Sequence record: PQ287320.1
Length of the DNA stretch: 64,000 nt
Reading direction: 5' to 3' (one strand)
Positions 17,773-44,530 of this stretch are shown in pieces. Both the position numbers and the translations under genes were made by a program. Within the stretch, counting starts at the first letter, position 1, and every line of letters begins with the position of its first letter. A model generated the notes under the pieces. That model made no database searches. It saw only the letters and a list, made by a program, of their open reading frames with translations, and was not told the DNA's origin.

Positions 17773-17812
17773 TGTCGTGAATCTTGACATCCACATATTC
17801 CGGGGGCATAGT
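17773..17812 (+). promoter_or_regulatory. Lysis promoter: operator motif plus TTGACA-N17-CATAGT
   Basis: TGTCGTGAATCTTGACA at 17773-17789; -35 TTGACA 17784-17789; -10-like CATAGT 17807-17812, upstream of the endolysin. Confidence 0.65.
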
Positions 17813-17847: not shown

Positions 17848-18486
17848 ATGCGTGTCTCCGACGCCGGCCTCAAACTGATCCAGGCCTGGGAGGGTCTTGG
17901 TGACGGTAATCCCGCCACCGTCGATCTCGAACCCTATATCTGCCCGGCTAAAGTCTGGACCGTCGGCTGGGGCCACGCCCTGAAAACGCCCACCGGCCAG
18001 ATCATCGACGTGGACGTTTTCGGCGCCGCCAGGGCCAAGGCCCTGGCGGCTGAATCCATGCAGCGCAAGTTCGGCAAGGGCGCGATCACCAAGGATCAGG
18101 CCCTGGCCCTGCTGCGCGAGGACGTGACCTTCTTCGAGCGTCAGGTCGAGAAGATCACCAACGCCAGCGCCGCCCAGGCCGAGTTCGACGCCCTGGTGTC
18201 GTTCGCCTATAACTGCGGCGTCGCCAACCTCCAGTCCTCGACCCTGCTGCGGATGCACAACGCCGGCAAGCGCCGCGTGGGCGACGTCTCGCTGACCGAT
18301 CTCTGCCAGAAGAGCAAGCTGTCGACGCCGATCGACAACGTCGCCGTCGCCTTCGTCCGCTGGAACAAGTTCAACGGCAAGTGGGCGCTGGGGCTCTTCC
18401 GCCGCCGCCTGTCGGAGGCCCTGGTGTACGGCGGCCACAACGTCGACGAGGCGGTCAAGGCCGCCCAGGGCTTCAAGGGCTGCTGA
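17848..18486 (+). CDS. Endolysin, GH24 phage lysozyme
   Basis: IQAWEG..PYICPAKVWTVGWGH (E..C/D..T catalytic triad) and FDALVSFAYNCG, SSTLLR, GLFRRR. Confidence 0.92.
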   Translation: MRVSDAGLKLIQAWEGLGDGNPATVDLEPYICPAKVWTVGWGHALKTPTGQIIDVDVFGAARAKALAAESMQRKFGKGAITKDQALALLREDVTFFERQVEKITNASAAQAEFDALVSFAYNCGVANLQSSTLLRMHNAGKRRVGDVSLTDLCQKSKLSTPIDNVAVAFVRWNKFNGKWALGLFRRRLSEALVYGGHNVDEAVKAAQGFKGC

Positions 18487-18488
18487 TC

Positions 18489-18976
18489 ATGAGCCTGTTC
18501 GGCATCATCGCCCTGGCCTGGAAGTTCTTCCTCAACCCGGCGGTCATGGGCGTCGTGTTCGCGGCGATCGCGGCCCTGAGCGGACTGTGGTTCCTCGGCG
18601 GCCCGGCGCTCTTCTGGAAGGTGATCCGCGACGCGCGCCTGTGGCTCCTGGTCGCCGTGGCGTCCGTGGTCTTCGGCTACGGCCATCTCCAGGCCAAGCT
18701 CGAACAGACCGAGAAGCGCCTGGAGCAGGTCGAGAACCAGAAGCGGTCCCACGACGACGGCCAGGAGGTCGTCAAGAACAACATCAAAAAGCAGGTCAGG
18801 CGCGCCAAGCAGGCGGCCAAGTACCAAGAGGTTATCCACGATGCCCGACTGGCGAAAAGCTCGACGCGCTCCTCGACGAGTTCGCGCGCGAGCAAGGCGT
18901 TCCTGATCCCCGCCCTGCTGACGCTCAGCCTGACTCTGGCGGCGTGTCAAAGCGTCCCGGTCGGATTCTCCCCTGA
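18489..18976 (+). CDS. Inner-membrane spanin (Rz-like); 1-nt break at ~18845
   Basis: N-terminal transmembrane segments followed by a coiled coil. Adding one C to atgcccga (18841) carries the frame through PTGEKLDALLDEF.. to TGA 18976. Confidence 0.78.
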
Positions 18977-19229
18977 CGACCTCTACCCCAAGGAACTGCG
19001 GACCTGCACCGCTGATCCCAAGGTCCCGCTGCGCCCGGCGCCCGCCCTGCCGCGCGCCGAGGACGACCAGACCGGCTACGTCAAGAACCTGAAGCTCGCC
19101 GCCGCCGACTGCCGCGACAAGGTGGAGTCCTGGAACGAACGCGCGGTCAAGTACGAAGCCCAGTACAAGGACATGAACGCCAGCCCGGTCAGCAAGCTGT
19201 TCGGCCGGCTCAAGGGCAAGAAGCAGTGA
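18841..19229 (+). CDS. Outer-membrane lipoprotein spanin (Rz1-like), overlapping the i-spanin
   Basis: With the same +1 C correction, ATG 18841 gives MPRLAKSSTRSSTSSRASKAFLIPALLTLSLTLAA-C, a signal peptide with lipobox LAAC, followed by a Pro/Cys-containing periplasmic region. Confidence 0.8.
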
Positions 19230-19725
19230 CCGTCCGCGCCTCCAACTTGCCGCCGTGGGTGGCGGCTCCGCTGCGCGTCTGCGGCAACTTCTTCCGCTGG
19301 GTCCGCGAGACCCTGGACATGCTCTGCGACCGTCCCGACCACCTCCAGCGGCTGGCGATCATCGGGGCGGGCATGTCGCTGTTCCCCATGGTCGCGATCA
19401 TGGTCTGGATCGTCTGGAAGGGCTTTGGCGAGCGCCCCGAACTGATGTCCCAGCAACTGGGAATTCTCGGCAACGCCCTCTATGGCGTGCTGGGCCTGTT
19501 CGCCATCGCGATCATCGCGCTCCTTGGCATCGTGCGCGGCATCCGCGTCAGCGGGCCGGGCGGCGTCAACTTCGAGGTCGAGACCACCGCCGGCAACGAT
19601 GACGGCCCCAGCCTCTCCCCGGTGAACAACACCACGATCGTCGAGCGGGGTCGTCGCTACGGCCGCGATCACGATTGCGACCCCAATCCCCTGCCGGCTC
19701 TGGCGCCGGCGCTATCACGGAGTAG
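19226..19725 (+). CDS. Putative holin (two transmembrane segments); 1-nt break at ~19690
   Basis: Two hydrophobic helices and a charged C-terminus, directly after endolysin and spanins. The corrected frame ends at TAG 19723-19725. Confidence 0.55.
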
Positions 19726-19730
19726 GGACC

Positions 19731-19892
19731 ATGCGCGAAGGCTTCATGCTGGAAGGCTATGGCGGTCTGAAGATCGGCGACGGCGGCTCGAACGGCCTCG
19801 TCGACGGTCTGATCGGCGGCATCCTGCCGATCAAGGACGACATCTCCGGCGACGGCGGGACCGAGATCATCTCCCGCGACGACTACGGCTAG
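19731..19892 (+). CDS. 53-aa Gly/Asp-rich small protein (absent from the ORF track)
   Basis: RBS ggagtaggga then ATG; MREGFMLEGYGGLKIGDGGSNGLVDGLIGGILPIKDDISGDGGTEIISRDDYG*; strong GC3 codon bias matching neighbouring genes. Confidence 0.65.
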   Translation: MREGFMLEGYGGLKIGDGGSNGLVDGLIGGILPIKDDISGDGGTEIISRDDYG

Positions 19893-19915
19893 ACCCTCTG
19901 CGACATACGGTCGCA

Positions 19916-19955
19916 TGTCGTGATCCTTGACAGATCAGCGTTCTTAGAGTATGGT
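19916..19955 (+). promoter_or_regulatory. Sigma70-type promoter TTGACA-N17-TATGGT with overlapping operator
   Basis: TGTCGTGATCCTTGACA 19916-19932; -35 at 19927-19932; -10 at 19950-19955. Confidence 0.75.
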
Positions 19956-19961
19956 TCGCGC

Positions 19962-20259
19962 CACTTGACGGCATCCCACCGTCCCCCATGGCTCGCGGCC
20001 CACCGTTCGCAGGGACACGTTCGCGACCAAAGCGGTAGCCGGAACGACGCTAGGCCGTAAGGTCAAAGCCTCCGGAACACGCGGTAGCCGGCTGGAACGC
20101 TAGGCCTCCTCGTCCAAACGGGGTCATAGTCTGTGAGGCGCAAGCCAAAAGGCCCCACCACCCGACAAGGGTTCACGCGTGATGCGGAAGACGGGCGTCA
20201 GCCCTGAAGAGTCTCAGATACAGGAAGACCCGCCGGAGCGATCCGGCGGGTTTTCTTTT
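19962..20259 (+). ncRNA. Unassigned structured non-coding RNA candidate (~290 nt)
   Basis: Bounded by a strong promoter and an intrinsic terminator; no ORF with an RBS; GNRA hairpins (ggcc-GTAA-ggtc, ggc-GCAA-gcc); duplicated module GCGGTAGCCGG..ACGCTAGGCC. Confidence 0.6.
20224..20259 (+). terminator. Intrinsic terminator (probably bidirectional)
   Basis: gaagacccgccgga-GCGA-tccggcgggttttc followed by tttt, between converging transcription units. Confidence 0.85.
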
Positions 20260-20279
20260 GCCAGGACGGAGGAGATCGC

Positions 20280-21059
20280 CTAGCGCTTGGCCTTGGACAG
20301 GGTCGGGGACAGGTCGCCGATCTTGCCGACCACCTTGCCGAGGATCGCGATCTTCTTGGGATCGACGTCGACGTGGTCCTTCAGGTCCGCGTCGTAGACC
20401 CGGTAGGGACCGGTCTTGATCGGGCGGGTGATGTGGGCGACCCGCATGACCTTGTCCATCCCGTAGACGAACTCGCCGCCGGCCGTGTTGGGCTCGACGT
20501 CGCGGCGCACCACCGCCATGTCGCCCGGCTTGAGCGACGGGGTGAAATCGTTGATGATCGCCAGGGCCAGTTCCGTCGCGTCGGCCTCGAAGCGCTCATA
20601 GAGCCAGTCGGGGTCGAGGTTCCAGGTCCGCAGGCGGGTGAACTCGCCGGTCCGGCCCTTGAAGGCGACTTCCTCGATCGGGTTCTGCGGACCGACGCCA
20701 AACGCGATATATTCGGGCGTGGTCTTCAGGACGTGGGCGATCTGCTCCAGCACGTCGATGTGCGGCTTGACGCTGTCGGTCTCGTACATGATGTACGCAG
20801 TGCGGGCCATCGGCCGACGCTCGCCGGCTTGGCGCGGCGCCCAGCCCGGCTTGGTGCTGTTGTCCTTGCGGGACGTGCTTTGCTGGGTGAGGTAGACCAT
20901 GTTGGCGACCTGGACCTGCGTCAGGTCGAGGGCCTTGCGGCAGGCGGCGATGCGCTGACCGATGGTCTGAGGATGCTCCAAATCCGCATCCTTGTGGATC
21001 AGGGAACGAGCGCGGTGGGCCGTTCGGTCCATCGGCTTCAGTTCAGCCACGGCTTGCAT
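20280..21059 (-). CDS. XRE-family HTH transcriptional regulator with S24-like C-terminal domain (phage repressor-like)
   Basis: TIGQRIAACRKALDLTQVQVA..YIMYETDSVKPHIDVLEQIAHVL..EYIAFG HTH; C-terminal P.LKPGD.AVV..ILGKVVG; RBS ggaggag before ATG 21059. Confidence 0.8.
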   Translation of the reverse strand: MQAVAELKPMDRTAHRARSLIHKDADLEHPQTIGQRIAACRKALDLTQVQVANMVYLTQQSTSRKDNSTKPGWAPRQAGERRPMARTAYIMYETDSVKPHIDVLEQIAHVLKTTPEYIAFGVGPQNPIEEVAFKGRTGEFTRLRTWNLDPDWLYERFEADATELALAIINDFTPSLKPGDMAVVRRDVEPNTAGGEFVYGMDKVMRVAHITRPIKTGPYRVYDADLKDHVDVDPKKIAILGKVVGKIGDLSPTLSKAKR

Positions 21060-21259
21060 ATTCGTTTCTCCTCCGTCCGTCGAGAACCGCGTCATCAGGT
21101 GTCTGTGTAACCCGTGACATTCGCGATGGTTCCGCGACGCAACGTAACCTGTCGATATTGACAAATCGGGGTGTACACCCTCTTTGGCAACACATCAAGG
21201 CCAACATCGTAAAAATGTTGCGGAGGCGACTTAGCGCCCTGGAGGAGGGTCCGGGGCCT

Positions 21260-21943
21260 TTAAGCCCCGGTCGATCCGAACCCCCCGGCGCCCCGTTCGG
21301 TCTCGGTCAGGCTGTCGACCTCGACCACCGGCGCGATCAGGCACTGCTCAAGGATGATCTGGGCGATGCGGTCGCCCGGATTGATCACCACGTTCTCGCC
21401 CATGAAGGGCGCGCCGAAGATGTCGTTCTGGATGCCATGGTGGGTCAGGATCACCTTGACCTCGCCGGTGTAGTCGGCGTCCACCACGCCGGCCAGGACG
21501 CCCAGGCCCTTGACGCCCAGCCCCGAGCGGGGGGCGACGCGGGCGTAGGTCCCTTCGGGCGCGGTGATCGCCAGCCCGGTCGGCAGCAAGGCGCGCTGGC
21601 CCGGTCGCAGGGTGACCGGCTCGGCCCCGTCATAATAGACGTCGAGGCCGGCGGCCTTCGGCGACCCGCGCGTCGGGAGCTTGGCGGTTTCGGTCAGACG
21701 CTTGACCAACAGGACAGGGCCGTCGTGCTTCACCTTGGTCAACTCCCTCGCCTCATCCCAGGACAGGTACTTCAGATCGCGCGTGAACCGGCCATAGATC
21801 GCGACGTTCTGGCCAGCGCCCGAACAGACGTCCGCCTCGATGCCGGCGCCCCGAAGGGCGTCGGCGAGGCCGTAAGCCTGTTCGGCTTGCGCGGTCCGTT
21901 GATAGAAGACGGTAGCTCGGCCGTAAAGGGTGCTCGGGGACAT
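21260..21943 (-). CDS. dut: dUTPase (trimeric) with ~70-aa N-terminal extension
   Basis: AAGLDV, RVAPRSGL, GVVDADYTGEV, GDRIAQII and RGAGGFGSTG (motifs I-V). Confidence 0.93.
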   Translation of the reverse strand: MSPSTLYGRATVFYQRTAQAEQAYGLADALRGAGIEADVCSGAGQNVAIYGRFTRDLKYLSWDEARELTKVKHDGPVLLVKRLTETAKLPTRGSPKAAGLDVYYDGAEPVTLRPGQRALLPTGLAITAPEGTYARVAPRSGLGVKGLGVLAGVVDADYTGEVKVILTHHGIQNDIFGAPFMGENVVINPGDRIAQIILEQCLIAPVVEVDSLTETERGAGGFGSTGA

Positions 21944-21959: not shown

Positions 21960-23393
21960 TTAACGGGGGATGTCGAGATGGTCGGCCAGATCGTCGGCGC
22001 CGCCGATGAAGGCTTCCTCCTCGCCGGCCGCGTCCAGCAGGAAGACCATCGGCGAGGAGTTCCAGGCCGGGTGGCCCCAGTTCTGGCGCACGTCCTCGAA
22101 CTTGGCGCGGCGGTCCTCGTCGCTCGGCTGGATCGCCTCGAACGGGATGTCCTGGTCGGTCAGATAGGCCTTGGCCCGGTCGCAGTGCGGGCAGTTGACC
22201 TTGGTGTAGACGCGGTAGGCGGGCGCGCCCGCCGGCGCGGTGACCGCCATCTCGTCGAGGCGCTTGACCGACCAGTAGCGCGGCGTCTCGGGGATCGCGC
22301 AGACGCCGTCCTCGGCGCAGCCATCCTCGTCCGCCGGCGGGGTCCAGACCGGGCGCTGGAGGAAGTTGAACGCCCGCTCCCAGCCGGGAATCTCACCCTT
22401 GCCGTACTCCGTCGAGCGCTGCTCGAAGAAGTTGGTGTGGGTCGGGGCGTTCATGATCCAGTCGAGCCAGTCGAACGGGTTGATCTTGACGCCGTAGTTC
22501 GGCTTCAGCCCCAGTTGGAGCAGGCGGCGGTCGGCGATGTAGCGGATGTACTGCTTGGTGTCCTCGGGCGTCACGCCCTCGATCTGGAGCTTGCGGAACT
22601 GCCCCGAGCGACGCTCGGCCCGGTTCTTCGCCGCCGGCTTGGCCTCGGCCATGTCCGGGGCGATGGCGAAGGCTTGATCGATGAAGGCGTCCTCCAGGGC
22701 GACCATGGCGCGGCAGGCGTCGTAGATGCGCTTCTTGGTCTCGTCGTTCCAGGCGCGCGGGTGTTCCTTGATCAACTCGTGCAGGAGCTTGATCATCGAC
22801 TCGACGTGGTGGCTCTCGTCGCGAATCGACCACTCGACGATCGTGGTCATGCCCTTCATGCGGTTGCGGCGCTGGAAGGACATCAGGAGGGCGAAGGACG
22901 AGAAAAGCTGCATCCCTTCGCCGAAGGCCGAGAAGACGGCGATGTCGACCATCAGGTCGGCGATCGAATGGCCGCTCTCGCGCTCGAACATGTACTCGTG
23001 CTTCTCGCGCATCGCCTGATAGTCCAGGAAGGCGCGGAACTCGACCTCGGGCAGGCCCAGGGTGTCGATCAGCGTCGAATAGGCGTCGATGTGGTTGGCC
23101 TCGGCGGCGATGAACGCGCCCAGCATCATCCGGACTTCCGGGTGCGGGAAGCGCGGGCCGTACTTTTCGAAGTAGCCGCGCGCCACGTCGACGTCAGCCT
23201 GGGTGAAGAAGCGGAAGAGTTGCGTCAGCAGGACGCGCTCGTCCGGCGTGAGCTTCTCATTCCAGTCCTGGATGTCCTGGTCCATCGGGGCTTCGTGGGG
23301 AAGCCAGTGCATGGCCTGCATCGTCTTGTAGGCCTCGTAGGCCCAGGGGTAGTGGAACGGCTTGTAGTAGTCGCGGGACTTCAGGAGGGACAT
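21960..23393 (-). CDS. nrdB: Ribonucleotide reductase beta subunit fused to a C-terminal glutaredoxin-like domain
   Basis: FRFFTQADVDVA, EANHIDAYS, EGMQLFSSF, WSIRDESHH and NFFEQRSTEY; C-terminal YTKVNCPHCDRAK..SSPMVF (CPHC). Confidence 0.92.
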   Translation of the reverse strand: MSLLKSRDYYKPFHYPWAYEAYKTMQAMHWLPHEAPMDQDIQDWNEKLTPDERVLLTQLFRFFTQADVDVARGYFEKYGPRFPHPEVRMMLGAFIAAEANHIDAYSTLIDTLGLPEVEFRAFLDYQAMREKHEYMFERESGHSIADLMVDIAVFSAFGEGMQLFSSFALLMSFQRRNRMKGMTTIVEWSIRDESHHVESMIKLLHELIKEHPRAWNDETKKRIYDACRAMVALEDAFIDQAFAIAPDMAEAKPAAKNRAERRSGQFRKLQIEGVTPEDTKQYIRYIADRRLLQLGLKPNYGVKINPFDWLDWIMNAPTHTNFFEQRSTEYGKGEIPGWERAFNFLQRPVWTPPADEDGCAEDGVCAIPETPRYWSVKRLDEMAVTAPAGAPAYRVYTKVNCPHCDRAKAYLTDQDIPFEAIQPSDEDRRAKFEDVRQNWGHPAWNSSPMVFLLDAAGEEEAFIGGADDLADHLDIPR

Positions 23394-23445
23394 GGCGGTC
23401 TCGGAAATGGAGGGCAGGGGAGGTGCAGGGAGGCCAGCGGCCTCC

Positions 23446-26253
23446 CTAGCCCTCGCAGGCGAGGCAGTCGGACGACGCGGTCGGGTTGAGCGCCAGCATG
23501 GCGGCTTCCTCGGCCGAGCCCTCGGTGACGGGCTCCTCGGCGATGTCGATCTTCTTGCGCTCGATCTTGTTGTTGGTGTTCTCGGCCCGCTTGGGGGTCG
23601 ACGAGCGCAGATAGTAGAAGGACTTGACGCCGGCGCCCTCGCCCCAGCCCAGGAAGTGGAGTTCCGAGAGGTACTCGGCGTCCGCATCGTGGGGCACGAA
23701 GACGTTCAGCGACTGGCCCTGGCAGATCGACTTGGAGCGGTCGACTCCGAAGGTCACGACCCAGCGCTGGTCCATCTCGCGGGCGGTCTTGTAGACCTTC
23801 AGGAGATGCAGGCGGTCCTTCTCCGGCATGGTCACGCCATGCTCGGCCAGGAACTCGACCGTGAAGTGCTGGATCGAGCCCTCGGCCGCGACGATCGACT
23901 TCCAGACCGCCTCGGTGTCCAGGCCCAGGGCCGCCAGCTTCTGCTTCAGCCAGCGGTTCTTGACCGCGAACGAGCCCGACAGGGTCTTGTGCAGGAAGGT
24001 GTTGGCCGGGATCGGCTCGATCGACGGCGAGGTCCCGCCGCAGAGGATCGACGAGGAGGCGTTGGGCGCCACGGCCAGCTTGTGGGCGAAGCGCTCGCCC
24101 GTGCCTTCCATGTCCGGGGCCTCGCCGCGCTCCTTGCCGAGCCGCAGGGAGGCCACGTCGGCGTGCTTGCGCAGGTGGACGAACAGTTCCAGGTTCAGCT
24201 TGCGGGCCGCGTTGCTCTCGAACGGGATGTCGAGCATCTGGAGCAGCGAATGGAAGCCCAGCAGACCCAGGCCCACCGAGCGCTCGCGCATCGCGCTATA
24301 GACGGCCCGGTGCATCTCGTCCGGCGCGTTGTCGATAAAGACCTGGAGGCAGTTGTCGAGCATCCGCATGAGGTCTTCGATGAAGGTCGGGTGGTCCTTC
24401 CACTCCAGCCACTTCTCGGCGTTGACCGACGACAGGCAGCAGACGGCGGTCCGCATCTTGTTGAAGATGTCGCGCCCCGAGGCCAGCATGATCTCCGAGC
24501 AGTTGCCCGTCAGGTAGCCGTTGAAGACCAGACGGTTGCGCAGCGGCTCGGTGGCGCAGAAGACGTCGGCCTTGTGCGCCAGCGGATGGACGTCGGCGAC
24601 CGTCGCCGCCAGGATCGCGGCCACGCCGATCGCCGCGTCGCGCGGCTCGACCGTGTTGGCCAGGATGAAGCTGCGTTCCGACAGGTAGGCCACGTCCCAC
24701 TCGGCGAGCGAGAAGGCGTTGACGGTGTCGGTCAGGCGGATGCGCGGGTGCAGGCCCGACTCGATGGCCATGAGGCGCATCTGGCGGATCAGGTCGACGT
24801 CCGTCGAGCCCACGGTGAGCCAGCGCACCCCGTCGATCTCGATCCACTCGCCGGCCGCGTCCAGCGCGCCACCCAGCCACGTCAGGCGCCGGTCGACGTT
24901 CCAGGGAAACGGGACGACGCCGGGCGACAGGGTCAGGGGGTCGAAGCGCAGGGTCGTGCCGTGCTCGTCGCCTTCCAGGTTCAGCGACAGGGCCGACAGG
25001 CGCTTGAGCACCGCGTCGGGCGTGTTGACCGGCACGAAGGCCGACAGGCGGTGCTTGTCGTCGAAGCCGGCGAAGGTCGTCCAGCCGGCCGCGTAGGCGT
25101 GCTCGACCGGCGGGGTGCGCTCGGACACGCCCTCGATCACCGGCGCCTGGGCCTTGGCCAGGACCGTGCCGTTCTTCAGTTCGCCGGCCCGGACTTCCTT
25201 GCCGTCCTGGGTGTAGAACTTGTGGTAGGGCGTGCAGTCGATGTAGTCGCCGTCCTCGAACCAGACGCGCACCAACGAGGCCTTCTCGTCGGTGGGGTTG
25301 GTCTGGTGGATCAGCACGCGGCTGAACTCCTCGCCGTTCCAGACGTCGTGGTACTCGCCCTTCAGGGCCTCGATCGGGAGGTGACCGCTGCGGGTCAGGA
25401 TTTCGGTCTCGCCGACGACGCAGAGGTTCGACTGCTTGACCTTCAGGCCGAGCTTCTTCTGGGCCTCGGGGAAGTGGCGGTTGGAGGTGTCGATGAAGTG
25501 GATGTAGGGCTCGCCCGTCTGCATCCGCGTCTCCATCAGGAGGCGCCACAGTTCGCGCGCCCGCTCCACTCGGATCACCTCGCCCGTCTTGGGCGAGCGC
25601 AGGGCGAAGTCGGTGTCGTCGCGCACCGCGATCATGAACTCGTCGGTCACGTTGACCGCGTTGTGGAGGTTCGTGATCTTGCGGTTCTGGTCGCCGCCCG
25701 TGGGCTTGCGCGCGGTGATGAACTCGCGGATTTCCGGGTGGTTGATGTCGAGGTAGACGGCGTTGGAGCCCCGGCGCGTGCCGCCTTGGCTGACGGCCAG
25801 GATCAGGCGGTCGTCCACCGCCATGAACGGGATCACGCCGGTCGACTGCGAGCCCTTGGAGGTCTTCTCGCCCAGGCCGCGCAGGGCGCCGTAATAGGAG
25901 CCGATGCCGCCGCCCATCGACGAGAGCCAGATGATCTCGTCGTAGTGCTCGGAGATCGATTCGCGGCTGTCCTCGATCGCGGTGAGGAAGCAGGAGATCG
26001 GCAGGCCACGGGCCGAGCCGCCGTTCGACAGCAGGGGCGTGGCGAACATGAACCAGAGGTTCGAGACGTAGTCGTAGAGCCGCTGGCCATGCTCGGCGTC
26101 ATCCGCGAAGGCCGCACTCGCGCGCGCGAAGGCCTCCTGGGGCGAGCTTTCCCCAGGCAGCAGGTAGCGTTCACGGAGGGTCTGAAGGGTGAAGTCGTCG
26201 AGCAGGGCGTCGCGGGCAAGATCAATCTTGATTTCGGAGGGTGCGACAGCCAT
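23446..26253 (-). CDS. nrdA: Class I ribonucleotide reductase alpha subunit with an intein
   Basis: FATPLLSNGG, PISCFL, SQGGTRRGS, QSNL/CSEI, TAVCCLSS, LAVAPNASSS, CQGQSLN, KSFYYLRS and C-terminal CLACEG; no ATP cone. Confidence 0.95.
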   Translation of the reverse strand: MAVAPSEIKIDLARDALLDDFTLQTLRERYLLPGESSPQEAFARASAAFADDAEHGQRLYDYVSNLWFMFATPLLSNGGSARGLPISCFLTAIEDSRESISEHYDEIIWLSSMGGGIGSYYGALRGLGEKTSKGSQSTGVIPFMAVDDRLILAVSQGGTRRGSNAVYLDINHPEIREFITARKPTGGDQNRKITNLHNAVNVTDEFMIAVRDDTDFALRSPKTGEVIRVERARELWRLLMETRMQTGEPYIHFIDTSNRHFPEAQKKLGLKVKQSNLCVVGETEILTRSGHLPIEALKGEYHDVWNGEEFSRVLIHQTNPTDEKASLVRVWFEDGDYIDCTPYHKFYTQDGKEVRAGELKNGTVLAKAQAPVIEGVSERTPPVEHAYAAGWTTFAGFDDKHRLSAFVPVNTPDAVLKRLSALSLNLEGDEHGTTLRFDPLTLSPGVVPFPWNVDRRLTWLGGALDAAGEWIEIDGVRWLTVGSTDVDLIRQMRLMAIESGLHPRIRLTDTVNAFSLAEWDVAYLSERSFILANTVEPRDAAIGVAAILAATVADVHPLAHKADVFCATEPLRNRLVFNGYLTGNCSEIMLASGRDIFNKMRTAVCCLSSVNAEKWLEWKDHPTFIEDLMRMLDNCLQVFIDNAPDEMHRAVYSAMRERSVGLGLLGFHSLLQMLDIPFESNAARKLNLELFVHLRKHADVASLRLGKERGEAPDMEGTGERFAHKLAVAPNASSSILCGGTSPSIEPIPANTFLHKTLSGSFAVKNRWLKQKLAALGLDTEAVWKSIVAAEGSIQHFTVEFLAEHGVTMPEKDRLHLLKVYKTAREMDQRWVVTFGVDRSKSICQGQSLNVFVPHDADAEYLSELHFLGWGEGAGVKSFYYLRSSTPKRAENTNNKIERKKIDIAEEPVTEGSAEEAAMLALNPTASSDCLACEG
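24502..25422 (-). mobile_element. Intein (307 aa) inserted just before the RNR active-site cysteine
   Basis: QSNL|CVVGETEILT...VFNGYLTGN|CSEI: Cys1, terminal Asn and +1 Cys; degenerate LAGLIDADG-like blocks (YAAGWTTFAG, WLGGALDAAG). Confidence 0.92.
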
Positions 26254-26329
26254 GGGGTCTCGTTCTCGCATCAGGGCACGATGCGTTAAAAAGCCCTGCG
26301 AAATCAGGGCCTTAAGTTGACAGCAAAGG

Positions 26330-26374
26330 ATGGTTAAGATAGCCTGAGGGTCCCGAAAGTCAAGATTCACGACA
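26330..26374 (-). promoter_or_regulatory. nrdA promoter: operator/-35 (TTGACT), GCTATCTT -10, TTAACCAT box
   Basis: Reverse complement reads TGTCGTGAATCTTGACT-ttcgggaccctcag-GCTATC-TTAACCAT. Confidence 0.65.
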
Positions 26375-26414
26375 CTCGCGAACCCCTCAAAGATTCCTTG
26401 ACAGCCCTTCGGAT

Positions 26415-26654
26415 TTACTCGTCCGCGAACTTCATTCCGGCCGCCTTCAGGATGTCCTTGGTATTGCAAGGCTTTCCATCCAGGAGGAAGCTCATCTTGG
26501 TTTCGCGGACGCGATCCCCCAAGGCGGCGATCGCCCGTTCGAGGACCGTCATGCCGTCGCCGAGCGGCGCGATCAGGGCGCCCGTTTCGCGCGGAAGGCG
26601 AGGACCGCTGGTGCTCGCCTTCTCCTCGGCCGGCTTGCGACGCTTACCGGACAA
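26415..26654 (-). CDS. Hypothetical protein
   Basis: 79-aa ORF with phage-like codon usage in the - strand operon; start codon uncertain. Confidence 0.5.
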   Translation of the reverse strand: MSGKRRKPAEEKASTSGPRLPRETGALIAPLGDGMTVLERAIAALGDRVRETKMSFLLDGKPCNTKDILKAAGMKFADE

Positions 26655-42329: not shown

Positions 42330-43205
42330 TTTCCGATGGGCTGAGACTACACCCATCAGCAATCCCGCTTCGAGGATTATTCCCCAGGTGCGACCCCAGG
42401 TATTCCCTCGACGTCCACCAGACCCCTTGCGGTAGTCCAGTCCGAGATCATCGCCGCCGTTCTTGCGCACCCCGAAGGGATTGCGGGTCTGGCGTTTGAC
42501 CCATCATGGCGAACTACTCGACAGTTCCTTCCCCGCTGGGCTTGCGACCCACTCACCGGCGCTAACCGGCTGACGAAGCTCTTCCTATCGACACCTCGCG
42601 GGCTTGCGACCCTTGAGATGACTCCGTTACCCGAAGGCCGGAGCATTTGGCGACTTACGTCCGCCACTGGACCAGTCTTTGCGTTTTTCATCGAAGCGGG
42701 GATTGAACCCGCGACCGACAGCTAGGATGGCTGTTGCACTACCACTGTGCTATTCGCAAACCCACCAAGACGTGCTGGTCCAGTTGTTTCCAGGGCTTTT
42801 GACCCCAGAAATGCAACACGCCTCATGTCTTTCGCCTTGCGGGCTACTCGACTGTCCTTCGGGACCTCTGTCTCATCCAACCCTTCGGCCAGACTGCCCA
42901 GCACCCCTTGGACTGAAGCAAAGCTCTTCACCGCGAAGTGTCGAACCCTGCAACCCAAACGGTTATCCGTACTCCTTGGATCGAGTTGCGTGGGTAGTCC
43001 GGTGGCGCCGGACTGGTGGTTAAAGCCTCAGAGTTACCCAGGCCCCACCTTGTCTCCCTCGATCTTCAGGTCTATCCCCTTTTGCAAGAGGCGGCCAGCT
43101 TCCCAGCCCGGACCCGTCGGCTTCCTCTGTCCTCTTGCGAGGTCGGGCGGCCTATGGGAGACCGTCCCTGTCACCCCGTCGCCGGGGCTTTCGTCGGAAG
43201 CGACG
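42330..43205 (-). ncRNA. GOLLD-like giant ornate RNA (~870 nt)
   Basis: - strand motifs match the GOLLD consensus as I recall it, in the expected order: GAGUAGCCCGCAAGGCGAAAG (42829-42849), GUGUUGCAUUUCUG (42806-42819), AGCACGUCUU, CCGGUUAGCGCCGG (42556-42569), CCGCAAUCCCUUCGGGGUG (42466-42486) and GUAGUCUCAGCCCA (42337-42350). Many GNRA and UUCG hairpins; own promoter and terminator; phage tRNA-cluster context. Confidence 0.8.
42688..42759 (-). pseudogene. Degenerate tRNA-like domain (UCC, Gly-like) embedded in the GOLLD-like RNA
   Basis: Intact D arm GCAC-AGUGGUA-GUGC, anticodon stem ACAGC/GCUGU and T arm GCGGG-UUCAAUC-CCCGC, but A33, a broken acceptor stem and no CCA. Confidence 0.7.
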
Positions 43206-43240: not shown

Positions 43241-43363
43241 CGACTTTTTCGTCCTTGATCGAACTTTTTCGACACTATCGCGCCAAGTGGTTGATTTCCG
43301 TGAAGCTTCCATCAGGGCCTCGCCTACGCGCGAAAGGAATGTCGTCCGTCGTGACGTTTTTTC

Positions 43364-43399: not shown

Positions 43400-43770
43400 A
43401 TCGTTGTAATTCGGACAACGGAACTGGCGGCAAGACAGGGGTGCGAATCCCCTCGCCTCCACCATCGACGCCCGGCGCTGGGAGTACGCGACTCCTGGGC
43501 AGGGAGTGTTACCCTGGCGGGCTGCGGCCCGAGCCAAAGGTAGCCGGGCGTCGTTGATGGGGGCGACTAGCTTTCGATTGGCGCTCGGGTCTGGAAGACG
43601 CAACGGTGGGTGACCTCCACATCGGCTTGCCGGTGATCGGGTCAGGCAACATTAAATGTCGCCGCCAATGACAACGACGTCGTGGCTTTCGCCTCGGCTC
43701 GTGAAGCCATCGCCGCCTAATAAGCGGTAGAGGAGCCCGCCGGGAGCTTGGCAACAGAATCCCGGCACCT
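43400..43770 (+). ncRNA. ssrA: Permuted two-piece (alphaproteobacterial-type) tmRNA
   Basis: Acceptor piece ends AGGGG-UGCGAAU-CCCCU-CGCCUCC-ACCA (43464). Coding piece starts GGGGGCG at 43559, giving a G3-U70 Ala identity pair. Tag ORF (V-A-)ANDNDVVAFASAREAIAA** at 43658/43664-43723. 3' GGGAGCUUGGCAACAGAAUCCC motif; helix-2 complementarity between the pieces. Confidence 0.95.
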
Positions 43771-43991: not shown

Positions 43992-44070
43992 CGCGGGGTA
44001 GAGGAGTCCGGTTGTCCTCGTCTGGCTCATAACCAGAAGATCGTGGGTTCAAATCCCATCTCCGCACCCA
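43992..44070 (+). tRNA. tRNA-Met(CAU), initiator type
   Basis: CGCGGGG 5' end with a C1xA72 mismatch, UCUGG-CUCAUAA-CCAGA anticodon arm, GUGGG-UUCAAAU-CCCAU T arm, encoded CCA. Confidence 0.92.
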
Positions 44071-44530
44071 GGACCCGAACGCCGGGGGACACATCAGAAC
44101 GATGGCGTGACAAGCCCGGAGAGAACGGGCACTCCAGTCCGGGGTATGAGGCCGGACTAGCGGACGCCGTAGTGATAGCAGGCGTGACACCCGGAGATAG
44201 CGGGACCGATTTTCCAGGCTTCATGCCCGGCGTATAAGACCGCAGGCCTCGGCCATCGGGCAGTGTCAGGGGATGAGGCTAGTCCTCGGCCAACCACCTA
44301 GCGGTGGGGCCAGGGCATGGAGCTTGGAAAGTCGGTTCGGTACGGTGGCTCGACAGGTAAGGCATCGGCCTCATAAGCCGAGGGGCTCGTCCCCAATACT
44401 GGTTCAAATCCAGTTCGTACCTCCAAGCTCCAGAAGTGCGCTACGTCCGTATAGCTCGGCCAGTTCGTGCTCCGGGGTGCTTCAAGAAGGGTATGGCCAG
44501 AAATGGTATGTAATAAGCCCTCGCTTCTGT
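44071..44530 (+). ncRNA. Unassigned structured RNA region enclosing the CAU class-II tRNA
   Basis: Two copies of the ACGCC..GGCGTGAC-stem-GAGA module; hairpins agtccgg/ccggact and tgcccgg/tcgggca; an 11-bp inverted repeat clamping the tRNA; no credible ORF. Confidence 0.5.
44339..44425 (+). tRNA. tRNA(CAU) (Met or Ile2) with a long variable arm and U73
   Basis: GGUACGG/UCGUACC acceptor, UCGGC-CUCAUAA-GCCGA anticodon arm, variable arm GGGG-CUCGU-CCCC, T arm ACUGG-UUCAAAU-CCAGU, then U-CCA. Confidence 0.85.

Follow-up and report, generated by a model that had tools for sequence, protein, structure and literature searches.

The DNA analysed here, a 64,000-nt stretch of record PQ287320.1 (hereafter the window), belongs to Caulobacter phage BL57 (PQ287320, 100% match). 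A predicted non-coding RNA (ncRNA) sits in it within a 387-nt gap, with a 53-aa Gly-rich ORF upstream and a convergent XRE-type HTH gene downstream. In BL57 and related records, nothing is annotated in this gap save, in some of them, a terminator, and the conserved RNA gene of ca. 300 nt is without annotation in all records examined. The features of the locus, in window positions, are as follows.

17848-19892, + strand: lysis cassette (endolysin gene at 17848-18486, membrane/spanin/holin genes, and a small ORF), with its own promoter motif at 17774
19731-19892, + strand: 53-aa Gly-rich ORF, the last gene of the lysis cassette (TAG stop at 19890-19892)
19899-19915, + strand: inverted repeat TGCGAC-N5-GTCGCA, just past the stop of the small ORF and 12 nt ahead of the -35 hexamer
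19917-19932, + strand: promoter/operator motif GTCGTGATCCTTGACA (16 nt), which holds the -35 hexamer TTGACA (19927-19932)
19950-19955, + strand: -10 hexamer TATGGT after a 17-nt spacer, with predicted transcription start at ca. 19962
19962-20259, + strand: predicted ncRNA of ca. 298 nt, its ends inferred from promoter and terminator geometry rather than mapped
20224-20259, + strand: intrinsic terminator with arms at 20224-20237 and 20242-20255 (14 nt, 93% complementary), loop GCGA, and then UUUU
20280-21059, − strand: convergent XRE-type HTH gene (Pfam HTH_3)

The initial annotation ascribed to this RNA a consensus promoter of its own, overlapped by an operator, and a strong terminator. The sigma-70-like promoter TTGACA-17-TATGGT was confirmed with a score of 10/12; it was the sole such site in 19000-21500 in the promoter scan and is among the four sites scoring at least 10/12 across the whole window. 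The -10 hexamer is invariant in the alignment of phiCbK-like relatives, and the promoters of the homologues read TTGACA-17-CATAAT in Colossus and TTGACA-16-TATAAT in Gurke, with the same TTGACA layout in Bajun. The motif GTCGTGATCCTTGACA is probably what had been called the operator. The 16-mer GTCGTGAATCTTGACA, allowing up to 3 mismatches, occurs 15 times in the window, where 0.36 sites would be expected; this finding, together with the -35 lying inside GTCGTGATCCTTGACA, is consistent with an operator overlapping the promoter. Other sites of the same motif class lie before the lysis cassette (17774) and before the RNR operon (26373, − strand), and a spaced variant precedes the tmRNA. Since the ncRNA shares the motif class with these other units, it appears to use the standard promoter class of the phage.

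The terminator was also confirmed. It was missed by a simple terminator scan; its homologous site carries a rho-independent terminator annotation in the phiCbK and Karma records, and the ncRNA ends at a terminator in every lineage. The conserved promoter and the intrinsic terminator, both read from sequence alone, point to an independent transcription unit of the bacterial type. The inverted repeat ahead of the promoter is unchanged in eight phiCbK-like genomes, and Bajun, Colossus, and Gurke each have a distinct inverted repeat of their own at the equivalent place. This element may serve as a site for a regulator or else as a hairpin at the 3' end of the lysis mRNA. In Logan contigs of three RNA-seq runs, the whole 5 kb was spanned at flat depth, which is uninformative on transcript ends. 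The ncRNA region alone was matched in one wastewater library; however, other wastewater runs contain the lysis genes too, and therefore no ncRNA-specific enrichment can be claimed. A published infection time course of phiCbK makes no mention of the ncRNA region (PMC10688885).

The earlier statement that the region holds no ORF was right as to coding signature but not to the letter, as mechanical ORFs of 46 aa and 34 aa exist on the + strand. The 91 variable columns among eight close relatives are distributed 33/31/27 by position modulo 3, with no 3-nt periodicity, and single-base indels occur at four places between close relatives. This even spread over codon phases and the indels indicate that the region is not coding. 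We searched 19962-20220 with the covariance models of Rfam 15 and obtained no match at the gathering threshold or at E ≤ 10, bearing out the view that the RNA fits no known family; only terminator-shaped partial matches were returned (sX6, 21.7 bits against a threshold of 40). The Gurke and Colossus homologues, searched against Rfam, belonged to no family either, and no description of the BL57 ncRNA was found in Rfam 15 or the searchable literature. 5S rRNA, SRP RNA, the c-di-GMP-I riboswitch, box C/D, and boxB were dropped as candidates after the Rfam results and a check of the alignment. A ToxI-type repeat RNA of a type III antitoxin was rejected as well: there are no head-to-tail tandem repeats, and the two split copies found here lie 49-50 nt apart and are missing in relatives. 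We conclude that the ncRNA is a real, hitherto undescribed folded RNA gene, a new family of the familiar kind of orphan structured phage ncRNA.

Homologues and gene neighbourhood

By blastn, the ncRNA region matched 25 other phiCbK-like phage records at 81-87% identity, and a diverged homologue, in Brevundimonas phage Bajun, came from nhmmer. R1, a covariance model of the core that was built from BL57 19985-20111 and six relatives, matched Bajun (E = 2e-6), Colossus (9e-5), PW (3e-4), Gurke and Kikimora (2e-5), and Domovoi (4e-3). A second model (R2) lifted the homologues found by R1, which are themselves in its training alignment, to between 1e-13 and 3e-6; Bajun, Colossus, and Gurke, all three inside that alignment, scored 1e-13, 2e-12, and 4e-9, respectively. 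The new matches of R2 were Marchewka (5e-7) and an uncultivated 279-kb IMG/VR contig (2e-6). The range of homologues thus takes in the phiCbK and Rogue groups, Bajun, Colossus/PW, the five Brevundimonas jumbo phages checked, and the one uncultivated contig, and the evidence for the family rests on about seven cultured lineages. The search was widened by four motif-pattern scans and one XRE-protein scan of IMG/VR and by one pattern scan each of JGI metagenomes and GTDB genomes, without a further credible homologue; they yielded only known phiCbK-type phages, the 279-kb contig, and chance matches in coding genes. No copy follows the lysis cassette of Bertelyvirus BL9, and the ncRNA is therefore not universal in the subfamily. 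Judging by the genomes searched, the family looks confined to part of the Dolichocephalovirinae, and its range of phages and hosts is narrow. Its length grows from ca. 300 nt in BL57 to ca. 400 nt in Bajun and Colossus and ca. 600 nt in Gurke around a constant core. In Gurke and Domovoi, which have natural minimal versions, this conserved core spans only ca. 80 nt.

Wherever the upstream flank of a lineage could be read, the lysis cassette, ending in its small ORF, immediately precedes the ncRNA and has the same orientation. Such an arrangement was seen in phiCbK, Rogue, BL10, Magneto, Karma, Ccr10, RBC63, Bajun, Colossus, and PW, and also in Gurke, Domovoi, Kikimora, and Marchewka; the uncultivated contig offers an upstream flank of 126 nt only. 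The lysis cassette is the sole neighbour kept across lineages. The downstream neighbour varies: phiCbK-like phages and Bajun have the XRE gene there, Colossus and PW have a Ro60/TROVE gene, and the Brevundimonas jumbo phages have a DNA methylase gene. The RNA had been described as placed between the lysis genes and the XRE repressor; the first half of this setting is conserved, but the second is not. With the lysis side constant and the far side variable, the meaningful linkage is to the lysis cassette and not to the XRE repressor, and a link to the XRE gene was rejected.

Consensus fold and covariation

The proposed consensus fold consists of the helices below, given in window positions (window position = 19961 + RNA position).

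19967-19983, + strand: P1, hairpin GACGG/CCGUC with loop CAUCCCA, invariant in phiCbK-like phages
19989-20029, + strand: P2, arm UGG-c-UCGCGG...UCGCGA-CCA with inner CCC/GGG and loop ACCGUUCGCA
20032-20082, + strand: central arm P3-P5, which contains the first copy (module 1) of the duplication discussed below
within 20032-20082, + strand: P3, GCG-GU/AC-A-CGC with a bulged A, invariant in 13/13 sequences
within 20032-20082, + strand: P4, CCGG/CCGG, 3/5 pairs compensatory
within 20032-20082, + strand: P5, GCU-a-GGCC GUAA GGUC-aa-AGC with a GNRA loop, 3/7 pairs compensatory
20087-20105, + strand: P6, hairpin GCC-g-GC UGGAAC GC-ua-GGC, the second copy (module 2)
20120-20156, + strand: P7, GGGGUC/GGCCCC around P7a (GGC GCAA GCC), with a conserved UGA...GANA internal loop
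20161-20171, + strand: P8, hairpin CCC GACAA GGG (CCUC GAAA GAGG in the Rogue group, CCCA GACG UGGG in Bajun)
20172-20189, + strand: P9, hairpin UUC-a-CGC GUGAU GCG-GAA, which contains GAUGCGG
20193-20204, + strand: P10, hairpin GGGC GUCA GCCC, two pairs compensatory

Comparison of the homologues shows that a predicted multi-hairpin fold has been maintained by compensatory substitutions across seven cultured lineages. Support for the core comes from a 13-sequence model alignment (A8), which is model-fitted and thus leans towards structure; in it, 96.9% of cells are paired, compared with 27-42% when the partners are slid by 1-3 columns. Both sides have changed in 13 of the 34 pairs. The covariation score of A8 is 0.245 against 0.011-0.045 for slid partners, and none of 500 shuffles reached the observed value. 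The fold was therefore supported above both slid and shuffled controls, and the raw sequences by themselves plainly reveal compensatory change in P2, P4, P5, and P6. P2 (helix 1 of A8) is 100% paired, and four of its eight pairs have changed on both sides. P6 (helix 6) has three compensatory and two one-sided pairs, and reads CCCGAC/GUCGGG in Bajun and CCGGC/GCCGG in Colossus. In Gurke, Domovoi, and Colossus, the arm equivalent to P2 forms a short hairpin with a (U)GGAA(C) cap. In place of P1, Bajun has CUGGGG/CUCCAG and Colossus has a 10-bp hairpin. The 20 G.U cells of the fold fit an RNA of the + strand.

In the 3' domain, P7, P7a, and P10 have compensatory changes among close relatives (pairs counted by script), and Bajun adds more. 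Within P7/P7a, the pair at RNA positions 163-191 is U.G, C-G, or U-A and that at 177-184 is G-C or C-G; the loop of P7a is either GNRA or UUCG among close relatives, and Bajun has AGGGA-aC/GUCCCU and GCGGC/GCCGC. P10 is GGAC/GUCC in the phiCbK group and has a different loop in the Rogue group. P9 is weakly supported because its changes are one-sided (U-A to U.G); its GAUGCGG occurs once per lineage, 75-105 nt ahead of the terminator. P3 and P9, being without two-sided variation, are proposals only. The P3 pairing GCGGU/ACACGC is preferred because it can form in all homologues, whereas the rival folds, in which CACGC pairs with GCGUG or the two modules pair with each other, are impossible in Bajun, Colossus, and Gurke. 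The full-length single-sequence fold and RNAalifold of close relatives disagree on long-range pairings, and the folding energy of the single sequence is only mildly unusual (z = -1.81). Four blocks, UGGC, CCAA-R-GCGGUA, CACGC, and CUGGAA, located at junctions and in one loop, are invariant over all lineages, and the P6 loop CUGGAA(C/A)G is invariant family-wide. The single-stranded linkers are the least conserved parts of the ncRNA. GNRA-type loops, noted from the BL57 sequence at the outset, are indeed present (GUAA, GCAA, (U)GGAA(C), GACAA, and GCGA).

The initial annotation centred on a two-copy module at 20032-20056 and 20081-20106, taken as two equivalent sites. The duplication itself is real and far beyond chance, with exact copies of GCGGTAGCCGG at 20032/20081 and of ACGCTAGGCC at 20047/20097 (11 + 10 nt). 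However, it is exact in BL57 only. The phiCbK group carries GCAGCAGCCGG in copy 2, which reads GCAGCAGCC in that group and GCAGUAGCC in Rogue and BL10. The duplication is absent from Bajun, Colossus, Gurke, and Domovoi, and Bajun has a plain hairpin at the place of copy 1. Moreover, the two copies fall into different helices of the consensus fold: copy 1 provides the 5' strands of P3, P4, and P5, and copy 2 is hairpin P6, so that ACGCUAGGCC pairs rightwards in copy 1 (the covarying 5' strand of P5) and leftwards in copy 2 (the 3' strand of P6). The equivalence of the two sites was therefore not upheld. The P5 insert looks like P6, and the simplest reading of the alignment is that the P4 loop received an incomplete P6 copy in the phiCbK lineage. 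The 11 + 10-nt duplication of BL57 would then be a lineage-specific elaboration and not a pair of equivalent functional sites.

Two further structural proposals failed on comparison with the homologues. Each copy had been thought to form a GCG/CGC stem enclosing loop-E-like GUA/GAA nucleotides. The strand opposite GCGGUA is (C)ACACGC, 45 nt downstream, in 13/13 sequences, and GAA precedes it only in phiCbK-like genomes, being missing on the homologous strand in Colossus, Gurke, and Domovoi. A sarcin-ricin/loop-E motif was rejected because GAA is not conserved opposite GUA, and its register also clashes with P4. The fold had also been closed by pairing TGACG (19966-19970) with CGTCA (20196-20200). 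Both are present, but CGTCA forms the loop of P10, which is UGAAAA in the Rogue group, and TGACG belongs to P1, which covaries in Bajun (GACGG/CCGUC to CUGGGG/CUCCAG). A kissing interaction between GAAC of P6 and GUUC of the P2 loop was rejected, since Bajun and Colossus do not preserve it. At the level of the family, a two-site design does have one argument on its side, although not at the coordinates of the BL57 duplication: in the minimal forms of Gurke and Domovoi, P2 and P6 both end in an identical C-UGGAAC-G cap. BL57 keeps this cap in P6 only, and the Colossus cap is a GGAA tetraloop closed by U-A.

Possible function and comparison with known RNAs

Our preferred reading, held tentatively, is that the ncRNA is an independent, trans-acting scaffold or decoy RNA that binds protein. 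Invariant junction and loop nucleotides amid drifting helices, the GGAA and GNRA loops, and the variable arms point to protein recognition or a compact tertiary core and not to antisense action. As a scaffold or decoy, the ncRNA would be transcribed as its own unit from the standard promoter class of the phage, and read-through from the lysis operon may add more. It would act in trans as a folded RNA. The most likely role of its invariant bulged-A helix (GCGGU/ACACGC), of the hairpins capped by GGAA, and of the GNRA loops would be to offer one or several proteins a specific platform, in a small RNP or as a decoy.

The constant position after the lysis cassette on the same strand could also mean that the ncRNA is a cis element of the lysis operon, that is, a 3' untranslated end stabilising, processing, or terminating the late transcript and insulating it from the neighbouring unit. 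Read-through is plausible, because the inverted repeat that follows the small ORF lacks a U tract, and the only strong terminator of the region is the one that ends the ncRNA. We consider this unlikely because every lineage examined for one has a near-consensus promoter separating the ncRNA from the cassette, and because the invariant junctions and the 300-600 nt of covarying structure far exceed the needs of a terminator or stabiliser. A base-pairing regulator, either an sRNA acting on phage or host mRNAs or a terminator read-through antisense to the XRE gene, is less likely than a protein platform and, in our estimate, very unlikely. In its favour, the ncRNA of phiCbK-like phages converges on the XRE gene, and pairing of GCGG in P9 with CCGC in the 5' arm of the terminator could allow regulated read-through; however, the convergent partner is not conserved (Ro60 in Colossus, a co-directional methylase gene in Gurke), the complementarity of the ncRNA to the start regions of the lysis genes was not above background (z from -1.8 to +1.3), and the single-stranded linkers, least conserved of all parts, argue against it. 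We give no greater probability to a large RNA that is catalytic (a ribozyme) or self-assembling (architectural, such as GOLLD or ROOL), with a conserved core and lineage-specific arms. The growth in length from BL57 to Gurke around a constant core, the many GNRA loops, the invariant junction nucleotides, and the presence of a GOLLD RNA in the same genome agree with such an RNA, but the ribozyme and large-RNA models of Rfam were unmatched, the core is just three hairpins, and a cleavage site, a ligand, or multimers would have to be postulated.

The initial model, in which two equivalent 25-nt modules with a GCG/CGC stem and a loop-E-like interior bind two copies of one factor, is highly improbable. 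The exactness of the duplication and the twin C-UGGAAC-G hairpins of Gurke and Domovoi, the latter at other coordinates, speak for it; the divergence of copy 2 in the phiCbK and Rogue groups, the missing modules in Bajun, Colossus, and Gurke, the assignment of the copies to different helices by covariation, and the unconserved GAA speak against it. Least probable of all, and rejected here, is the idea that a Ro60/Rsr protein has the ncRNA as its Y RNA-like partner. Like YrlA and YrlB, the ncRNA is structured and has its own transcription signals, and in Colossus and PW it converges on a TROVE/Ro60 gene, the terminator region being shared. However, the Ro60 gene adjoins the ncRNA in these two phages only. 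The two lie ca. 25-30 kb apart in Gurke and Domovoi, and a tblastn search of BL57, phiCbK-like phages, and Bajun gave no Ro60 homologue. YrlA RNAs are recognised by a Ro-binding motif, GNCGAA(N)G/CGAA, near the 5' end (PMC4201824, PMC12135203). Neither CGAA nor GNCGAA occurs anywhere in 19962-20259, the BL57 ncRNA is also without a tRNA-like T/D module, and the YrlA model did not match the ncRNA of BL57 or Colossus. The YrlA-like matches of Colossus lie upstream, across the Ro60 gene from the ncRNA (locus L011, 5033-5644), in line with the published descriptions (PMC4201824, PMC12135203), and no ncRNA copy was found next to Ro60 in phages of Xanthomonas, Ralstonia, and Rhizobium.

A more far-reaching version, that the ncRNA is the core of a new phage RNP or ribozyme working with the lysis module, is quite unlikely. 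If it were true, the RNA might, for example, time or license lysis or, late in infection, disable a host factor of RNA processing or defence, and its lasting attachment to the lysis cassette through the genome rearrangements of the subfamily would be explained. New structured RNAs of a few hundred nt with solid covariation are rare, and several earlier ones were ribozymes, riboswitches, or RNA cages. phiCbK is a classic Caulobacter phage and a widely used tool. The family comes with a tractable host and natural minimal versions, and its fixed position after the lysis genes suggests burst timing or burst size as a phenotype. The covariance model and the invariant motifs let annotators mark the ncRNA gene in genomes of the Dolichocephalovirinae.

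The comparison with other RNAs gives partial likenesses. GOLLD and ROOL are, like the ncRNA, phage-borne orphan RNAs, stand-alone, hundreds of nt long, and rich in GNRA loops, with a conserved core and variable peripheral arms. In the Rfam search, BL57 was found to carry a GOLLD RNA 22 kb from the ncRNA. The ncRNA matches neither model in sequence or structure and is smaller, with its three-hairpin core; GOLLD and ROOL are tied to tRNA clusters, whereas the BL57 ncRNA is tied to the lysis cassette and, so far, to one phage subfamily. CsrB/RsmZ-type sRNAs have repeated GGA hairpin loops, as do the minimal family members with their two identical C-UGGAAC-G loops. In contrast to CsrB/RsmZ, the ncRNA has one or two such loops and not many, and its invariant P3 has no counterpart there. 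By hand estimate, the BL57 ncRNA has ca. 6 GGA against ca. 5 expected for its composition, which appears to be about as expected. The alphaproteobacterial hosts are not known to have a CsrA-type protein. The 6S RNA of phage lambda (pR'-tR') is likewise a short, terminated transcript of a phage promoter tied to the lysis/late block. It lies upstream of the lysis genes as a by-product of Q antitermination, whereas the BL57 ncRNA lies downstream of them and is strongly structured and covarying.

A probable promoter/operator motif, the RNR genes and an RNA gene cluster

The 16-nt motif GTCGTGAATCTTGACA was found at 15 sites in the BL57 window when up to three mismatches were accepted, versus 0.36 expected. 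At the lysis cassette and the RNR operon, as at the ncRNA (19962-20259), it overlaps the -35 element of an apparent promoter; a spaced variant is present at 43348, at the tmRNA gene. The motif looks like the standard promoter/operator class of phage BL57.

5880, 12016, 17774, 19917, 35121, 37460, 38407, 53533, 55907, 60272, plus strand: GTCGTGAATCTTGACA motif sites
26373, 27330, 33463, 41114, 47456, minus strand: GTCGTGAATCTTGACA motif sites
21960-23687, minus strand: RNR beta ORF
23446-26469, minus strand: RNR alpha ORF
42338-42824, minus strand: GOLLD RNA (169.7 bits)
42692-42756: tRNA-like element embedded in the GOLLD RNA
43402-43720, plus strand: permuted tmRNA
43992-44067 and 44339-44422, plus strand: two tRNAs

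On visual inspection, an intein seems to interrupt the RNR alpha ORF (CVVGETEILT ... GYLTGN/C), and the RNR beta ORF ends in a CPHC glutaredoxin-like tail at its C-terminus. The GOLLD RNA, the permuted tmRNA, and the two tRNAs are grouped approximately 22 kb from the ncRNA.

Diverged ncRNA copy and the ORF closing the lysis cassette

A further diverged copy of the ncRNA core was detected (E = 2e-6) at 127-215 of L063, the uncultivated jumbo-phage contig IMGVR_UViG_3300001199_000001 (278,859 bp), and this copy adds new compensatory changes in helices P2 and P4.

19731-19892, plus strand: small Gly-rich ORF (53 aa), the last of the lysis cassette

This ORF had no match in Pfam. A small ORF is located at the end of the lysis cassette, 5' of the ncRNA, in most lineages examined, and at the same place in BL9, which is without the ncRNA, as well.

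Ro60 loci

A Ro60/TROVE+vWA protein is encoded by CcrColossus, PW, and the Brevundimonas jumbo phages (L011, the CcrColossus genome, and also L012, L013, and L015). Upstream of the CcrColossus gene were three sub-threshold matches to YrlA (Y RNA-like), the second of which is overlapped by an annotated tRNA.

L011 5033-5146, 5231-5327, 5535-5644: YrlA matches
L011 5196-5263: annotated 'tRNA-Gln'
L011 6024-7433: Ro60/TROVE+vWA gene
L052 2267-4290: Ro60 homologue locus of Xanthomonas phage MET23-P3 (43 kb)

The gaps of approximately 1 kb flanking the Domovoi Ro60 gene hold repeated GGCGUGACGG..CCAGAGGC units. The MET23-P3 homologue shows 59% identity to the CcrColossus protein, with a 700-nt non-coding gap upstream and a lysozyme gene directly after it; the adjacency of Ro60 and lysis genes is seen again outside the phiCbK group.
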